A stretch of DNA of 64,000 nt from Pelomyxa schiedti (lineage: Eukaryota > Protista > Evosea), in contig JAHLWZ010000489.1 of assembly GCA_020536535.1 (NCBI GenBank), positions 1-64,000 of the forward strand. The letters run 5' to 3'. The position numbers and the translations under genes were made by a program. The notes under the pieces were generated by a model that was given only the letters and a program-made list of their open reading frames with translations, ran no database searches and was not told the origin of the DNA. This document shows positions 5,075 through 49,800 of this stretch, in pieces (the stretch's first letter is position 1; every line of letters begins with the position of its first letter).

Positions 5075-6662
5075 TCACTCGTCCTCAGCGTCACCACAAC
5101 CGTCCCCGTGCTCCTCCTCCTCAGGATCTTCTTCTTCTTCACCGCCTTGGTTCTCGTCTGGGTCACGGAGATACCCAAAGGCCATGTGTCCCACACAATC
5201 ATTCCAGTTGTCAAGGAACCCCTGGTCATGGATGGGATCCCCAGTCTGCGTTGGTACCATAAGTTCTTGTTGTTGTTGTTCACTTCCACGTCCACCACGT
5301 CCGCGTCGCTTGTTCTTCTTCTTCTTGTTGGTGACAATTACATTGCGTGAGCTGAACAGTATTTGCTTTGGGTCGAGGGTTGTGGGCGTGATGGAGTTGT
5401 TGAGCCACTTGTCAAACAGGGAGGGGTCTTCCTCTATGTGCGCTTCCTCCTCTTTCCAGCAGAAGTGTGGCCGAACCTGCGCGGGATGAGGATTGGGAAT
5501 TTAATTGATTGGGCAGGCATTGGGGATAGGGATAGGGAAAATGAAATCACCTTTCTTGTTGAAGTCCGGATGCTAGGTGATGTGAATGTGAAGCTGTTTG
5601 GTTCCTCGGCACCACTGTGGGGTTGTGGTTGTAGCCGTAGAATGTTTCTCTGTACTTCGCTCAACCCAAAGGTGACCAAATGTGCAAATGAGTGCGAAAC
5701 ACGGCATAGACTACGTATTTCACACCTACTATCTACTGAACCGACATAGGTACCCTCGTAGACAGAGGTAAACCTTGATTTCCATAAAACAAGCAAGTGG
5801 AAAGGAGGTAATATGCATGTACCTTCCATCCTTGAGCATGAATATACCGAAAGTGGCCCGCTCTTCAAAAGAAGTAAGGTAATGAGATGCGTTTAAAGCA
5901 AAAATGCAGGATACGTCTCCTCGGCAAAACCCTATTCAATACTCTAAGTTTGAGGTTTTTATTCACATGGCACACCGTGGCAAGGGCCTGTATATCCCGG
6001 AACTGGGAGTAGATCTGCGGAGGAGAGCTGCTCAATTGGACCCCACCATAACTCACTCCAGTCAGGAGAGGGTTGTAATATGGTCCTTGAGTAACCTTCT
6101 CTACGGAGAGCCGTAAGATACAAAAACAACATAGAAAAGTACCTATCAGAGGAAACTGGAAAGCAATCTGTTATAGTGGACGAGTAATGAATGGCAAGAT
6201 AAGGGTCTGTTTTCCCGGGGAAAAAAGTGAACCAAGAATCCGAAGGTACAAAAGCACTGGTACCTTTGAATATGATATGGCTGTCCCACTCAACAATGGC
6301 CACTTGTTTTGCAGGAAGACTTGCACAAGCCATCAATTCTATCAGCAGTTGCACCCACCCATCCTTTCCCAGTAAAAAGTTAAAACCGAAAACGTCCCTG
6401 CCGGTCCCTCCCTATCCCATAACTCGAACTCACGTGTGGGTGCACACACCTTTGGGTCCGCATATCCGCGGCCCGTTGTGGTTGCAGTTGCGGCTCCGTC
6501 GCCGGCACTCGGCAGCCCGTTGGTCGCCATCACCATGTTGCGTGCCACTACCTGGCTTACACGACGCCACAGGCGGCACACGTGGGCACATGCCCAAACA
6601 AGTGTTTCGCTATCGCACTCCTGCACGATCTTGCCAACAACGTGCTCGGGAAGCGTGGACAT
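5075..6662 (-). CDS. F-box protein, multi-exon, with basic/acidic C-terminal tail
   Basis: N-terminus MSTLPEHVVGKIVQECDSETLVWACAHVCRLWRRVS fits the F-box consensus. Last exon VRPHFCWKEEE..KKKKNKRRGRGG..DAEDE*. Confidence 0.7.
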
Positions 6663-14757: not shown

Positions 14758-15171
14758 CAAACTCGGTTTTCTAAGAAAAGACCATGTTCAACAAAAAACG
14801 AGTCTCGTGCTCTGGAATGCTATTCGATCAGGCTCGGGGGGAAGTACCCAGACGTAGCCCAGGCAGCGCCCGACCACACGAATCCCATCCACTAGCACAA
14901 GTTTCGCTGCCCTGGTGGGCAAAACTCCGACCTGCACTGGCCATAAGTTAGTCCTCCAGTTTCCTCAAACACCCTTATGGGTGGCAGCTCTATGCCTGGA
15001 CAGATGAAATGGATACTCCTTTACCATGCATTTAGTGGTAGGAATCATTTCTCCCTCTTCTTTTAGGTTTATAAATATGGGGTATGTTACAATGAAAGTG
15101 GGGCCGGTTGTTGTGTTGTTGGGTTGATGTAACCAGAACTTTCCGTGGGCTATACATACAAACTGCAGGAA

Positions 15172-42000: not shown

Positions 42001-43398
42001 CTAAAGATGATAAGGTTTCTTTCCTTAAATGGCTTACTTACTGTGACTTGCTACACAGATTGTTTCTGTTGAGACTAGCAGACAGTCACCACTCATGTCT
42101 CCTTTCGTCGATAACCCAAAGAGGATTCAAGCATTGGCCCTGGAACCTGCACCTCCACATGTGTCAGGTAATGCCATTTTTGTCACTTTTTTATCCAAAG
42201 TGTTTTACGCTCTGAAAAAGATGCTGTCATCAAAGATTTCCTCAAGTTCTCTCATGAAGCAAATTTACAGAAGAAAAAAGAAGAGGAGCAAAAAGTTATG
42301 AAGTCATTGAAGGACTTCCACTCGCAACTTCCAGTAAGGAAAAAAAAATAAACTCAAGTCAAAATAACCATCCCATCAGCAACTTTTGGCAAAAAAGAAA
42401 AATACTTCAGATACTGGAGTGACCAAAGTTTGTTCACCAGCACCCACCAGTAACGCAACTGTCTCCAAAGAAACTACTACTACAACCACGTGCACTGCAA
42501 CACCAGCTTCACCTCCAGCCAGCACACTACCTTCTCCAGTAGTGAAATTGTCTCCTCTCGCTCCGTCATTCACCCCTTCAAGACTCCCCGCACCAACAAA
42601 AACAGCAACACCAAGTAATTTGTCAGTATCTAGCATTACTCTCAATCCGTTAGCACCCTCTTTCACTCCTGGGGTATGTGGAAAACACTTTTTTGATGAA
42701 AAATATTCTAACCTTTTCTTACAAACAGAAAAAGGCAAGTCCTGTGAACTTTTCTTCTTAGCCATGTCTGATAGAACATTATTACCAGGATCAGCCACTG
42801 GACCACAGTAGCAAGGGGAAATCTAATGTCCACAGCTTCATTGACTCTATTTGCCAATCTCTTGTTGCCCTGAGGCAACAGAAACCAGACAATAAAAACT
42901 TCCGTGTGTAAAGAAAAGCTGATCTTGTCATTTGCTAATTTTGTGGCAGCAATAACCTGGACTGGCACTGGCAGTGGAACATTCCCGGAAGACTTCGAAG
43001 ACGAGAATACTATTGATGAGACTGATCTAGCAAGTGACGAAAACGGGTTTTTATCCTTTTCCCCTTATTATTGCTTTGAATAATATTTCATATAGTTACT
43101 ACCCCGATGTTATGTACCCACAGGTTTGTAAATTCGGCTGTTTATTTTCCCATCGTTAATCAACAATAGGCCGGCTACGTACTGGATCCTTTTCCTCCAA
43201 TTCCTACATGTAAGAGTGATTCTTTTTCTTTATCCAATGCTTACATCTAACATTACAATTTGCCGCGAACAGACCCGCCTAGTTTCATTCCTCCAGTATG
43301 TCTTGGTCCTCTTTGTTTATAACATATTGACCAACAACCAGGCATTGGGAGTACCACCACCAATCCCAGGATTCCCACTTTATACATCCAGGTTTTGA
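39015..43398 (+). CDS. ATXN2: Ataxin-2/Pbp1 homologue (N/Q-rich N-terminus, LSm, LsmAD, two PAM2 motifs)
   Basis: GCKVVVQVKDGSKYEGIFHS; GFATDTEIS..ERELTPW; WDQFKTNEMLFGVKSTYTEEQYTT..AERIAHEME..NPHLAEERG..SEEDRFSAV; KLSPLAPSFTP and TLNPLAPSFTP. Exact start and end less certain. Confidence 0.92.
39330..39630 (+). repeat. AAC/CAA-rich coding repeat (poly-Asn/Gln tract)
   Basis: Runs of AAC/AAT/CAA encoding NNNNNN, QQQHQQQ, NNNSNNNNNNNHHQQQ. Confidence 0.85.
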
Positions 43399-43807
43399 CC
43401 ATAGAGCCCAATACATAAAAAAAAACAGAATCCACAACCTTATTCGAAAACAAAAAACGAAGGTGTTGTCGGCACCCACTCCCGCTAAGGAGTTAATGAC
43501 GAATGCAGGTATCCTGCTTGTCGAGAACCGCAACATAGTCGTTACCCTTGTGGGCGAAAAAGCTGACCCAGGCGCCGCAGAAGAACAGGTAGATTTTCGC
43601 CCAACAGCTCTTATGGGAAAGTTTCGCTGGGTGTTCTTTCCCCCAGTGGAGGAGAGAAGGACGTGTTATTGCAATACAATTACGTCGAAGTACGTCAGAC
43701 CTGACCAGGTAGACAAGTACAGTACTCCCTTTTTCGATCTGGAAGGAGTGAACAGATTTGCACTTGATACTTCGTCGAACATTGCACTTCGGGCGTAGAT
43801 CTTGTGA

Positions 43808-45268
43808 ATGTCAGGCGAGGTGGTGTGGCCGCGCGTGTTGGGGTTCGGTAACCCATTATTGGATATTACAGTCGACGTAAATGAGGCATTTCTCGCTAGG
43901 TCTCGTTTTTTTTTTTTTTCCCTTCTTTTCCCTCTGGGGGTCCTTTTTGGAACTGACACCCCTTATGCAGGTACGGACTGAGCCCGAATGCAGCTATTCT
44001 GGCTGGTCCAACTCACATGCCACTGTGCGTTAATTTCTAGCGTCTCCCCTTTGACATTTCGCCGTTTCCACCGTTTCTTGTTCGGCGCCGAGTTTAACGA
44101 ATTTGATTGAATTGAAAAGATACGAAGAAGTTGGAGCAATGACCAGCAAAAAGCTGACGACCGGCGGAAGTTGCTTGAATACCATGAGAGCAGTACAGGT
44201 CAATCCTTTTCGCTTTTACTCACCGTTTACTTTTTGCGGACTAACTGGGCGTAGTGGATGACGCAGAAGAAACACATGACTGGCTTTGTGGGCAGTATAG
44301 GAGTTGATATTCCCAACAGTAAATCTCTTCAAGATTTGGTGGTCAATTGCGGAGTGAAACCCCTCTTTATGACGGCTGAGAAGGCTCCAACCGGCACTTG
44401 TGCTGCTCTGATCTGCGGAACCAACAGGTTTTATCCTGTTTCTAACCCTAAACATAAACTCAACTCTTTCAGGAGTCTTGTTACGAATCTAGGCGCGGCA
44501 GATTTGTTCACTCACTGGCACTTTGAAAGCGACCTTGTCCAGCAACACATTGCTAACGCTGTTGCATTTTATGCTGAAGGATTTTTCGTCACAGTAGCGT
44601 CTCATACTTTAGTGGAACTTGGAAAAATCGCTCTTAAAACCAACAAGGTTTCCCATTTATCCGTTTTTATCAAATCCTAAAACGCTTGCAGCCATTTATG
44701 TTCAACCTATCTGCAGTCTTCCTGCTTCAAGTACCAGTATTTTGGAATGGCATGAAGCAAGTTCTTCCCTACGTTGACGTTTTATTCTGCAATGAGACTG
44801 AGGCTGGAGCTTTATCAAACCAAATGGGATGGGGAACGGTATCTCTCTACGAAGTTGGAAAATCTCTAACTGCAGTCAACAAGATATCCATTGAGGAAAT
44901 GGCCAAGAGGATTGCGGGAATGGAAAAGGCCAATACCAAGAGGGAAAGGATGGTAATTATCACTCAAGGGCCAGATCCCACTGTTGTCTTCCATGGAGGA
45001 AGAGTACCTACCCCGATTCACATGTGAAGTTAACGACCGGCTAGGTTAACGTATTTCCCACCCCAGTCGTTCCAAAGGCCGATATTGTTGATACCAATGG
45101 TGCAGGGGATTGTTTTGTAGGAGGTTTCATTAGTAAATTCATTGGAGCCTGGCCAAGACCAACAACTTACCAACCCTCCCTCAACGAATGTGTGCGGTCT
45201 GGGCAATATTGCGCAATGCACTGCCTTACGAATGTAGGGTGCTCATTTTGCGGTTTACCTAAGCAGCA
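43808..45268 (+). CDS. ADK: Adenosine kinase (PfkB family); N-terminal part of an apparent ADK-MESH1 fusion
   Basis: GFGNPLLDI, GGSCLNTMRAVQW, PTGTCAALI..RSLVTNLGAA, YAEGFF, FNLSA, DVLFCNETEA, IITQGPDP, DTNGAGDCFVGGF. Confidence 0.96.
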
Positions 45269-45313
45269 GTATTACCCTCTCACTCGAATACTTCATTTCT
45301 CACTTTCTGTTAG

Positions 45314-46207
45314 CACTGGTCTGCAACCGGTAATGAAGGCATTGGCTTTCGCAACTGAGAAGTATTCATTGACTTTATATTCACTCCTTCTCATGCCCAC
45401 ATCCAGACACAAGAATCAAAAGAGACTGGCCTCTGGGGAACCCTACATTTCTCACCCGGTTGGGGTCGCTAACGTACTCACTGAAGCTGGGGTATGCTGA
45501 GCAGTTTTTAGTTTTTCATTTTATTCATGTTTTCTATCCAGGTTGAGGACCCCACAGTTTTAATGGCTGCTTTCCTTCACGAGTAACCTTTATCTTTTTT
45601 TGACAAGTCCTAATTTGTTTCTCAAGCACCGTGGAGGATACTGGAACAACACCGGAGGAGATTGAGGCCGAATTCGGTCCCGCTGTCCGTGAAATTGTTA
45701 TGGAAGTCACTGACAATAAGTCTCTTCCCAAAAGGAAGCGCAAAGAATTACAGGTTCGGGCGTTTTTACCCGTGCTACAAAGTCTCATTCCGCTTTTTAG
45801 ATAGAGCATGCCTTGCACATCTCAAACTCTGCCAAGCTGATAAAACTGGCTGACAAAATTCATAACCTGGAGAGCTTAGCCCAGTGCTCCCCCTGGTTTG
45901 TTTCCCCTACCTTCCACCTCCCCTTTATTAACTCCGCTCTTTTTCCTTCATACCCACCAGGCCTGCGGATATAATGCGAGGCTACTTCATCTGGGGATTC
46001 ATGGTGGCACAAGGGCTGTTTGGGATCAACAGCCGGCTTGATGCACGGGCCCGGGCCGTGTTTGTCAACACAAGGCTACCTCCAGCCCATGTGGAACCTG
46101 TCATGCCATCCCTTGTTCCTGCTGAACTGCAACCCCACCTTATCCAATACTTGGAAGCCATGGACCGCATCGAGGCTGCTAAGGCTACTACCGCAACCAA
46201 ACATTGA
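45314..46207 (+). CDS. HDDC3: MESH1/HDDC3-type HD-domain (p)ppGpp hydrolase / NADPH phosphatase; in frame with upstream ADK
   Basis: Spliced [92 protein letters not shown]. Confidence 0.93.
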
Positions 46208-46856
46208 ACCACCAACACTCGAAGTTGAAGCCCATTAAAAAAATCAGAGTCTAGTTTTGAATCAAGATATTTCATGTGAAACACAGACCTTATTGGATTA
46301 TCATCCCAAAAAACCTAAGCACCGACCCATCTACTCGGGAACCAACTACCTACGACGCAGAGAATTCCGAATTGTGGGTCTGAGGAAGATATTGTGTTGT
46401 GCAATAAAAAACGAGAATTACTCCCTTATGGAGCACCACCAACCTCCCAAGCCTTTTCAGCCCAGGAACGGACATTCCAGGGCTACATCAGAACCAACAC
46501 ACAGTCCCCACTTTTGTGGAGACTGCACACTGGAATCCAACAAACCCCAAAGAGCCTTAAGTCCATAGCACCCCAAGCAAAGTCTTAATTCCCGCCACCC
46601 ACTTTTGTGGGCAAGATTAGGCTTGTTCCCCAGTCTGATAAATACCTATTTTTTTCCCGAAGGATCATTATGGGTTTTTTTTTGCAGTTTATTTTTTGTT
46701 TATGTTTTCTTCTTGGTTATTTGGTGTTTTTAGAGGTTTTTTTAGTGTTACAGAACCAAATTACATAGAGATGTGTCTCAATGGAAGTTTGTACAGCCCA
46801 GGGAGTGAGTGCCGTCAGTAGTATGACATAGTCTCATTCAGCAGCAGTACAGGTAA

Positions 46857-49800
46857 TCAGAGGTGGCTATTGCTGTTGCTTGTGTTAATGGTGTTGTTGT
46901 TACTGTTGGGTGAGGGACGTTGTGGTATGGGCCTCGCCGGAGGTGGTGGGGGTGTTGGTTTCAGTGGAACTCGGTGGGCAATTGAGGGGCTTGCCGGCCG
47001 CAGTGCCGGGTCCGGGTGTGGTGTGCTGCTGTGAGGTAGTGTGGGAGGTGATGTGGGGTGCTGTGTTGGGGATACCGGCGGCGAACCGGGTGGTGCTGTG
47101 GGCTGTTGTGTTGGTGATTGGCTGGTTGGTGTGGTGGAAGCCGGGCTAGTTGTAGTTGTGGAACTGGCGGTTGGTGTTGTGGTGGAGTTTGTGGTTGGAG
47201 TTGGAGGGCGGTTGACGGGTGGTGTGGCGGCGGGACCGGCATTTGGTGCTGTGGATGTGGATGTGGAAGGTGGGTGCGGAGTTGGGTTGGAACTGGGATT
47301 TGGAGTTGTTGGTGGGTTTGGAGTTTTGCTTGAAGGTACCTTTGGGGATGATGGCTCTAGGATGGATTTTGGTGAAAGTGATCTAATTATGGAACCTTTG
47401 TGCTCAATTAATTGAATTGAAGGAAGGAAAACGGCGCACTTGATTTCCGGGGCGTTTCCTCTTTGGAAGAGGGCGTTTTTGCCGAAGATGTGACACTTTG
47501 TTTTCGACGGTGTGCATAGCCACCATTCGCAGTTGCTTGGGTCATTAGAGAAGATATTTCCTGTTTCGGCTTAATGTTACACACAAGGTAAAAAAAAAAA
47601 ATACAGCTTGTTCCTCTTGCGTGAGCAATGTGATTTGTGAAGAGGGAGGAAGTATTGTCTCTTTTTCAAAACCTTGCATCAGATCTGCATCATGTCGACA
47701 TACCTTGGAAAAGTGAGTCTTTAGTGGTGAGATGGTGTGAACTTCGGAGTGGTGTCTCAGAAGCATCAGAATTGCATTGTCTATCACTGCCACGGTATCT
47801 GGTAAATATGCATCAATGTCGCCGCCTTGACGAAGAAACAGGGGTCCAAAAATGATGGCAGGCTGCCCTAGTGTAAGTCTAGGGTACAAATTTTTTGAAC
47901 CTCTTTACCCTCATTAAGTCGAAGTGGCAGGATTCGGCCCAACATCGCAAAAACGTTGTGGTTATTGTGAGCACAGCACTGTTACATGGAGGAAGTTGAT
48001 CTACGAGTTGCTTTAGTGCTCTGATCTCTTCGTCGGTACTGCTCTCCTTTGCTGATTCCAGAGTTGGTGTTAAGCGAAATAAAACGGGCATTTACCAACA
48101 GACAGTTCCCCGATTTTACAAAACTTGGAGAATAGGCCAAATGTAAGAAGTGGTTCTGGCATCTCTGAGAAGAACAGGCGAACGAGTTCACCCAGACAGC
48201 AAACATCCACTGTACTCATGTCAACTTCCAGCCCTACACCCGTGGACTCAGAGACAACACTTTTGAGAGAGTAAAAACCTGCATCAAATTGAGTCTTGAC
48301 CTTATCCAACAAAGAAGGACTGCATTCCGTAGTGAACAACTTTTCTGAGCTCAAGGCTGTGTTTATGTTAGACTTGGAAAAGTGAAGATAGATGAAAACC
48401 GTGTTCAAAAAGGTAGGAAAAGACAGTCAACAAGAACGGTGGGACAAGGGATGCACTATTTTGGGGCCGGGATGCAATAACAGCAAGTGGGAGACCAAAT
48501 TGTTTTGTCTCAACTGAAAGGAATTTTAACACTATCAAATATTGGTTGATGGCAAGTTATACCATTCACTTGAGACTGTTAAAAAAAAGTCAAAACACTA
48601 CAAACTTCGAAGAATGCTTACCTGAGAAAAGAGAATTTTGAAAAACTTTCTGGTTTGTTCATCTGACCCCCAAGACAACTGTGAAAGTGTTATCTTAATT
48701 TGAAGGAGTTCACACACACCACCAAAGGGCGATCATCCTTCAGGTACTTGACCCATGGCCGTAAAACAACACATAAAAGGTGTGTTGGGTCTCGTGTGAG
48801 TATCACTTCGTAGTTGGCCAGAATGAGCACTCTTTTGGGATAGGGTTGCTTATGATGAGGTGAGAATTGAGGTTGAATGCAGGAATGCGCATACTTTACC
48901 ATCGAAGTAACAGAATAAAATGCCATCCACAATGGCAAACCAATGGGGCTTTAGTTTGTCTTTGGAAGATAGAGCTTTTTTTCTGGCTTGCAGGGTTGTG
49001 GTAGTGATTGTGTGTGGTGTAGCAGTGTGGGGGGTTGCAGATGGTGATATTGTTGGTGAAGATGCGGTAATAATGGTTGTTGAAGTAGATAAAGCAGTTT
49101 GAGAAGTTGAGAAAGCAGAGGCACCAACAAAGCCTCCAATTGAAGAAACTGGGATAACTAATGGCACAGGAGTAGCTGCGGCCGGAAGAGAGGGAATAGA
49201 CAACGATGTCGTTGCGGGTGTACTGGTTGTAGTGGTGTCTGCAACAACAAGAGTAAAGTGCGCTGGTCGGAACACACCATTGCCGCAATGGACCTTTTTT
49301 TTGCTGACTTTAGCTGTAGTCCCACAAATCGCTCCTGGTATCTATAGAAAAGTTAACTTTCACAGTTATGGAGCAAGGTAACCATTCTTAGATGCTTAGC
49401 ATAATTTGGTTTCTGCCGTTTGTAGTTTTACAGTAAGTGAAAACGAGTTTTAAATTGTGAACTACCATAAGTCTTTCAAGAGCTAAAATAATAAGTGTGC
49501 CAGTGCCGACACCTTCAGTAAAGGAAAGGTTTCCATTCACCCACTTCACTAAGAAGGGTTCAGGAGGTGATAAAGGGAAGTTTGCTTACCAAGGGAATTG
49601 TTGTAGTGAAGGAATACAAATTCAGGAGATGGTGTGTCAAATGTTGCCTCGAAGATTGACGTCATTATAGAAAGTGGTGCCTCACAATCGAGAATTGCAA
49701 CTTTTTGATGTCAGGTGAGGGGTTGTAAGAAAGTGACTACAAGTTTGAAGACAATTGTCAGCACAAACGTAGGCGGCATTTATGAAGTTTGGAGCTGGAA

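Follow-up and report, generated by a model that had tools for sequence, protein, structure and literature searches.

Background

Enzymes of the MESH1 type remove the 3'-pyrophosphate of (p)ppGpp, and for animal MESH1 removal of the NADPH 2'-phosphate and of the 3'-phosphate on coenzyme A (CoA) is reported as well (10.1101/325266, PMC13221220). All of these reported substrates carry the phosphates in question on the ribose of a purine nucleotide. The role of MESH1 in eukaryotes is disputed: it has been put forward as a ppGpp hydrolase, as a NADPH phosphatase and, in recent work, as a CoA 3'-phosphatase. The known animal representatives, human MESH1/HDDC3 (3NR1, 5VXA) and Drosophila Mesh1 (3NQW), are stand-alone proteins of about 180 amino acids (aa) and have no synthetase domain. 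In the long RelA/SpoT homologues (RSH) the HD domain is combined with synthetase, TGS and ACT domains. A survey of RSH proteins from 2011 recorded Mesh1 in animals, amoebozoa, the choanoflagellate Monosiga and the fungus Cryptococcus neoformans, and the sole partner domain that it noted was DUF429, for one subgroup of small RSH. A purine nucleoside salvage kinase tied to the alarmone level is described in E. coli, where (p)ppGpp binds and inhibits the inosine-guanosine kinase Gsk (PMC10311079). Here we analyse a window of 64,000 nucleotides (nt) of the anaerobic amoeba Pelomyxa schiedti (contig JAHLWZ010000489.1 of assembly GCA_020536535.1, positions 1 to 64,000 of the forward strand, to which all coordinates refer), in which a plus-strand gene at 43808..46207 joins an adenosine kinase (ADK) to a MESH1-type HD hydrolase. 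We conclude with good confidence that this is a single gene, transcribed into one mRNA with one open reading frame (ORF), that it encodes a 568-aa protein built of ADK, a linker and MESH1, and that this arrangement arose once; the protein is probably bifunctional in purine salvage.

Gene structure and transcripts

The whole coding region of the fusion (43808..46207, plus strand) consists of 14 exons and 13 introns. Joined at GT-AG sites, exons 1 to 4 (43808-43899, 43971-44024, 44120-44198, 44255-44427), exons 5 to 8 (44473-44647, 44692-44837, 44883-45003, 45045-45268), exons 9 to 12 (45314-45361, 45407-45491, 45542-45582, 45627-45753) and exons 13 and 14 (45801-45895, 45961-46207) form a single open frame from the ATG at 43808 to the TGA at 46205-46207. 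The introns are GT-AG in 13 out of 13 cases and 41-95 nt long, 45 nt being typical of this gene. The spliced translation of 568 aa is identical to the public protein P0001, which NCBI lists as "adenosine kinase 2 [Pelomyxa schiedti]", a name from which the HD half is absent.

RNA evidence was drawn from four single-cell transcriptome runs (X1 to X4) labelled 'protist metagenome', all of one sample and one study, the contigs of which were aligned with positions 43400-46700. Every one of the 13 introns in the model recurs as a GT..AG joint in the RNA contigs. Two contigs, X2 record 7 (1313 nt, 44471-46166) and X3 record 9 (1179 nt, 44695-46255), run from the ADK exons through the seam between the two halves into the last HD exon, and the start of X1 record 3 falls, by arithmetic from the exon lengths, about 106 nt into the final exon of ADK. 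The contigs of X2 and X3 set the minimum extent of the mRNA at 43786..46255 (plus strand). Of the ends that carry the template-switch oligo, which mark cDNA 5' ends, one lies in X2 at 43786, preceding the ATG by 22 nt, and another at 44471. The loose 5' end of X2 at 43786 reads ...GTACATGGG, which is the template-switch oligo, and then GTGCTT; the genome directly upstream reads CATTGC and does not match. The GTGCTT may have been added without a template, or it may belong to a short 5' exon that is not annotated. The RNA also corrected the gene model of an earlier note on this DNA, which had missed the 45-nt ADK intron 44838..44882 (plus strand): with the GT..AG joint 44837->44883, found in X1, X2 and X3, the product has 568 aa and not 598.

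The central claim of that note, made from the DNA letters, was that ADK is fused in frame to a MESH1-type hydrolase, and it has held up well, as RNA bridges the two halves, three further orthologues carry the fusion and the catalytic residues are conserved in both halves. The details given for the seam also stand. The last ADK exon starts at 45045 and, read along the genomic sequence, its frame stays open for 151 codons to a TGA at 45498 that lies inside the HD intron 45492-45541. The 45-nt GT-AG intron proposed for the linker (45269..45313, plus strand, phase 2), located at the ADK/HD boundary, is spliced with the joint 45268->45314 in contigs of X1, X2 and X3; when it is retained the frame is kept and no stop is added. 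ADK, as the note had stated, lacks a stop codon of its own in either form, and no splice form giving it one was found. The mature linker amounts to about seven residues, HTGLQPV, at the start of exon 9, and we infer that the seam intron is a relic of a former intergenic spacer.

The two enzyme halves

The kinase half (exons 1-8, 43808..45268, plus strand, aa 1-354, no stop codon) is, by homology, a complete eukaryotic adenosine kinase (EC 2.7.1.20) with the fold of the PfkB/ribokinase family. The Pfam domain PfkB (PF00294) matches aa 50-353 at 3e-45. In a search of solved structures the top 18 matches were all adenosine kinases (4e-76 to 8e-36), closer than other sugar kinases; Anopheles ADK (3LOO, 4e-76) aligned with aa 10-352, the alignment reaching residue 359 of its 365-residue chain, and human ADK (1BX4) followed at 3e-67. 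The AlphaFold2 model superposes on ADK models with a root-mean-square deviation of 1.3-2.7 Å. The substrate and catalytic motifs GNPLLD, GG, NxxE (here NETEA) and DTNGAGD are all present and are invariant in the four orthologous fusions described below. The roles of these motifs, such as that of the catalytic Asp in DTNGAGD, are those of established ADK structures. The fusion is thus like human and Anopheles ADK over the full length and in all substrate, anion-hole and catalytic motifs, and its ADK domain stops only a few residues from the usual C-terminus; the difference is that no stop follows, but the chain runs on into the HD hydrolase.

The HD half (exons 9-14, 45314..46207, plus strand) comprises the linker and the HD hydrolase (aa 362-568) and is interrupted by five spliceosomal introns. 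Pfam HD_4 (PF13328) matches aa 364-485 at 2e-21, and the domain contains both the H...HD...D metal ligands and the catalytic pair ED. Pfam gives only PfkB, HD_4 and HD on the fusion protein, with no alarmone synthetase domain, a feature shared with human and Drosophila Mesh1. The strong PfkB and HD_4 matches on one polypeptide show that the frame is not open by chance. The motifs KH..Q.R, PYISHP, LHDTVEDT and KLADKIHN, which the earlier note had listed for this half, are in place; ISHP, LHDTVEDT and KLADKIHN match human MESH1 residue for residue and are invariant in the four orthologues. The likeness to the two animal proteins covers nearly the whole chain and includes the R/K-rich KHxxQxR, HP, HD, ED and KLADKxxN motifs. 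Among solved structures, human MESH1 (3NR1) scored 9e-46 and 159 bits at about 50% identity, with its residues 8-172 of 178 aligned, and Drosophila Mesh1 (3NQW) scored 2e-34, whereas Rel/SpoT HD domains and other small alarmone hydrolases were found at 2e-20 or weaker (Lmo0812 and Rel/SpoT at no more than 77 bits, other small alarmone hydrolases at 44 bits). The stand-alone HD relatives, which are 52-58% identical, come from animals (insect and fish MESH1 among them), bacteria and environmental samples and are ordinary Mesh1-type proteins about 180-200 aa long. When proteins were compared with the HD region of the fusion, the HD domains of long RSH reached at most 88 bits, as against 202 bits for the fusion of Mastigella in the same search; the stand-alone Mesh1-type proteins, in a separate search, reached 164-187 bits.

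By homology, then, the HD domain is of the MESH1 type, while the architecture of the protein is different. Known Mesh1 proteins stand alone, whereas the HD domain is here the C-terminal half of a 568-aa fusion and carries in addition a C-terminal extension of about 45 aa, which ends in a helix (540-567) with a predicted local distance difference test score (pLDDT) of about 93 in AlphaFold2. A tail similar to that of the fusion is found in some stand-alone relatives of about 200 aa, e.g. P0440. The long RSH resemble the fusion in placing the HD family in a multidomain setting, and no other such setting proved common among the proteins of 312-994 aa that were searched, but their partners are alarmone synthetase and regulatory domains and not a nucleoside kinase. 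The AlphaFold2 model of the whole protein has a mean pLDDT of 91.9, and both domains are confident.

Orthologues and origin of the fusion

A full-length search of 5.8 billion proteins placed two proteins with PfkB and HD_4, P0151 (571 aa, 60% identical) and P0152 (549 aa, 49%), above all plain ADKs. P0152 is a Trinity transcript of Mastigella eilhardi whose ORF is called complete (EukProt EP01105). P0151 is encoded by three contigs without introns, about 1.9 kb long and derived from three samples of the Joint Genome Institute (JGI), which share the same 5' untranslated region (UTR) and are 99.9-100% mutually identical; each holds one 571-aa ORF, running from 5' UTR to 3' UTR. These contigs look like mRNA, since the genomic copies, in the window and in contig L002, hold 11-13 introns. 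L002 is an environmental eukaryotic contig of 102 kb from an ENA metagenome assembly, is also found in two Logan runs, and bears the fourth fusion. Spliced protein-to-genome alignment resolved its gene into 12 exons encoding a 551-aa ADK-HD protein that is in frame across the seam. A last intron that the spliced aligner had forced in L002 was false and was removed, after which the frame reaches the same stop as L001, and P0146 was set aside as a gene call reading through introns of the L002 orthologue.

Nine intron positions, with their phases, are common to P. schiedti and L002, among them the next intron after the seam and the seam intron itself, which occupies the same alignment column in the same phase. 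Therefore the structure of the fused gene is older than the split of the P. schiedti and L002 lineages. In a four-way alignment identity is 47-65% between the ADK halves and 58-65% between the HD cores, the linkers are of similar length, and the HD motifs KH..Q.R, HP, LHD.VEDT and KLADKI.NL are invariant. The comparison demonstrates that the fusion is held by purifying selection with both active sites intact.

The same alignment bears on whether the HD half could be translated separately. The sole candidate start for a separate HD protein is the internal ATG at 45333..45335 (plus strand, Met362), which the earlier note had named as the place where its proposal might fail. There is no sign of its use: the loose-end listing of the RNA contigs, with 5' ends at 43786 and 44471, has no cDNA 5' end near 45333, and among the orthologues Met362 is shared by P0151 alone, its place being taken by Ala in Mastigella and by Phe in the protein encoded on L002. 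Because this residue varies among orthologues, a separately translated HD protein is not a conserved option.

In a FastTree phylogeny (LG+gamma) the fused ADK halves are monophyletic with a support of 0.83, and together with five stand-alone ADKs they form a fully supported clade. One of these five is a complete 346-aa ADK of Rhizomastix libera, another archamoeba. Since the Rhizomastix ADK is stand-alone, the fusion appears to be restricted to the Pelomyxa/Mastigella group within the Archamoebae, and a single fusion event in the Pelomyxa/Mastigella lineage is the simplest reading. In the FastTree phylogeny of the HD halves the fusion clade also takes in P0400, a stand-alone 210-aa protein whose contig is probably prokaryotic, though support for this is weak (0.77). 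Because of this placement, the HD half may have been acquired vertically or by transfer.

Rarity of the architecture

Both enzymes are well known, but their union in one protein is a new domain architecture, which is confined to a small clade and present unremarked in public annotation. When the 151-codon ORF at the junction was searched against 1.84 billion representatives, P0001 alone (568 aa, 99% identity) gave a seam-spanning match. Among proteins of 312-994 aa, a search with the HD region returned only two fusions and long RelA/SpoT homologues, a result to be read with the incomplete sensitivity of this search, which overlooked P0151, and with the non-exhaustive nature of the database searches. 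Foldseek found no cluster representative of the AlphaFold DB that aligns over both halves, and a feature search of the ESM Atlas returned plain ADK clusters only. No account of an ADK-MESH1 fusion turned up in full-text searches of the literature, likewise not exhaustive, which took in two papers on P. schiedti and the RSH survey of 2011. Nor is the fusion already widespread, a finding that the note had said would undo its claim, as far as the protein and AlphaFold DB cluster searches reach.

Other fusions of ADK came to light in the course of these comparisons. P0004 and P0014 (>1100 aa) are tandem ADK-ADK proteins, and P0173 of Balamuthia mandrillaris (604 aa) joins ADK to a short-chain dehydrogenase; they resemble the Pelomyxa protein in that ADK is fused, and differ from it in having no HD domain. 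The Mesh1-like P0395 (348 aa) proved to be an HD-HD tandem and not a kinase fusion.

Proposed function and alternatives

Lacking de novo nucleotide synthesis, P. schiedti relies on scavenged nucleotides, and it is host to two endosymbiotic bacteria and to a methanogen (PMC10579272). Because of these traits, of the substrates reported for MESH1 and of the inhibition of Gsk by (p)ppGpp, we favour a bifunctional enzyme of purine salvage. The kinase half would convert adenosine to AMP, and the HD half is predicted to strip the 3'-pyrophosphate or the 2'/3'-phosphate from ribose-modified purine nucleotides. Its candidate substrates would be (p)ppGpp and (p)ppApp of digested or resident bacteria, or else molecules of the NADPH or CoA type, as in animal MESH1. 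P. schiedti also feeds on bacteria. The tethered hydrolase might return ribose-phosphorylated nucleotides to the usable pool, and it might also shield the salvage kinase from alarmone inhibition, by analogy with what is known for bacterial Gsk. Gsk belongs to the same PfkB fold family as the ADK half. In the bacterium, however, the alarmone inhibits in trans within the cell that produces it, whereas the Pelomyxa kinase, found in a eukaryote, carries a covalently attached hydrolase that is predicted to destroy nucleotides of this kind.

Several points weigh against this bifunctional enzyme. The single polypeptide, expected at about 63 kDa, is deduced from DNA and RNA sequence, and both activities, like the substrate of the HD half, are predictions. 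The RNA support consists of assembled contigs from one sample, and assembly may merge overlapping transcripts and lose rare isoforms. The fusion could also serve co-expression alone, without kinetic coupling. In the AlphaFold2 model a predicted template modelling score (pTM) of 0.71 and a linker pLDDT of about 65 give no firm inter-domain geometry, and the predicted model lends no support to channelling between the halves. Finally, protection of the kinase would presuppose alarmones in the amoeba cytosol and alarmone inhibition of a eukaryotic ADK, both of which are assumptions of that model, taken over from the bacterial case.

The alternative that survives best keeps both activities and removes bacterial alarmones from the picture: the HD half would be a NADPH 2'-phosphatase or a CoA 3'-phosphatase, and the fusion would co-regulate adenylate, NADP(H) and CoA. 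Among solved structures the HD half is closest to human MESH1 (9e-46, about 50% identity), which is reported to act as a phosphatase on NADPH and on the 3'-phosphate of CoA, and both substrates hold ribose-phosphorylated adenosine, the nucleoside that ADK handles; yet the endosymbiotic bacteria and the reliance on salvage alone (PMC10579272), together with a bacterial diet, make a supply of alarmones plausible. On balance we regard this alternative as possible but rather unlikely. The alarmone-specific version of the HD function has about the same tentative standing. The protein could, in a fuller form of that idea, be a eukaryotic 'anti-alarmone' salvage enzyme of amoebae that are packed with bacteria and make no purines themselves, the MESH1 half of which breaks down bacterial (p)ppGpp and (p)ppApp, or recycles them, at the adenosine kinase while salvage keeps running, and by which the host may modulate the stringent signalling of its symbionts; to this we give somewhat less credence still. 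If it were true, it would suggest that adenosine-ribose phosphates were the original physiological substrates of MESH1 in eukaryotes.

One half might instead act as a sensor, with the HD domain binding alarmone, NADPH or CoA as an allosteric regulator, or the kinase fold serving as an adenosine-binding module. Nucleotide-binding domains are often reused as sensors, and the very short linker of the fusion forces close contact between the domains. However, the metal-binding and catalytic residues of both halves (GNPLLD, GG, NxxE and DTNGAGD; in the HD half H, HD, ED, the D of KLADK, and N) do not vary among four orthologues that are only 47-65% identical, and since such invariance is predicted by catalysis and not by binding alone, a sensor half seems improbable. 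Far less credible are two adjacent genes with overlapping or dicistronic transcripts, the HD protein starting at ATG 45333 and the RNA continuity being due to merging by the assembler, for although contigs across both halves do not prove one transcript and this ATG stands at the right place for a MESH1 N-terminus, ADK has no stop before the HD region in any spliced or intron-retained form, the spliced intron bridges the seam in three runs, Met362 is replaced by Ala or Phe in two orthologues with the frame kept in all four, and both halves share the complete Trinity ORF of Mastigella and the single 571-aa ORF between the UTRs of the mRNA-like JGI contigs.

As a natural Rosetta-stone fusion, the ADK-MESH1 protein offers a clue to the disputed role of MESH1 in eukaryotes. 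A fusion with ADK that is under selection constitutes independent, genome-encoded evidence and suggests that MESH1 operates near adenosine and purine salvage in at least one eukaryotic lineage. A single recombinant protein would allow the competing substrates to be compared directly, and the host-symbiont setting of P. schiedti makes the handling of bacterial alarmones testable. Moreover, the name 'adenosine kinase 2' hides a second enzyme from metabolic reconstruction of P. schiedti.

Candidate small structured RNAs flanking the gene

Downstream of the fusion gene, the minus strand of 46410-46612 is represented in all four RNA runs by a 233-nt circular contig with a cycle of 203 nt. Its joint, 46612->46410, has no letters between the two sides, and the depth is 26-128, as compared with about 20 for the neighbouring gene; no local direct repeat that would explain the cycle was found. 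Folding of the minus strand gives a nearly perfect rod (-94.5 kcal/mol, z -8.05), whereas the plus strand reaches a z of -2.7 only, and the rod therefore depends on minus-strand G-U pairs. The RNA begins with a 5' hairpin (GCCCAC-AAAA-GUGGGU) and ends in ...CUCGUU, followed by a T6 run that looks like a Pol III terminator, and TATTTAT lies about 30 nt upstream. A scan of 42500-47500 against Rfam gave no match. This 203-nt RNA is a candidate small rod-like circular RNA, or else template switching of the reverse transcriptase has linked an abundant small RNA head to tail.

A candidate at 6391-6587 (minus strand) was rejected as folding no better than shuffled sequences. Just upstream of the fusion gene, at 43456-43555 (minus strand), a circular-looking cycle of 100 nt was found in X4 (joint 43555->43456, depth 25), and an end with the template-switch oligo at 43541 marks a minus-strand RNA. 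It has the same kind of ends as the 203-nt RNA, namely a 5' GCCC-ACAA-GGGU hairpin and a 3' ...UUCGUU followed by a T6 run, and the same layout of the fold, in which a closed rod comes directly after a small 5' hairpin (z -3.8). A third candidate locus with these ends and this fold layout lies at 14797-14920 (minus strand, z -2.8). Together the three loci suggest a family of small structured RNAs in the P. schiedti genome.

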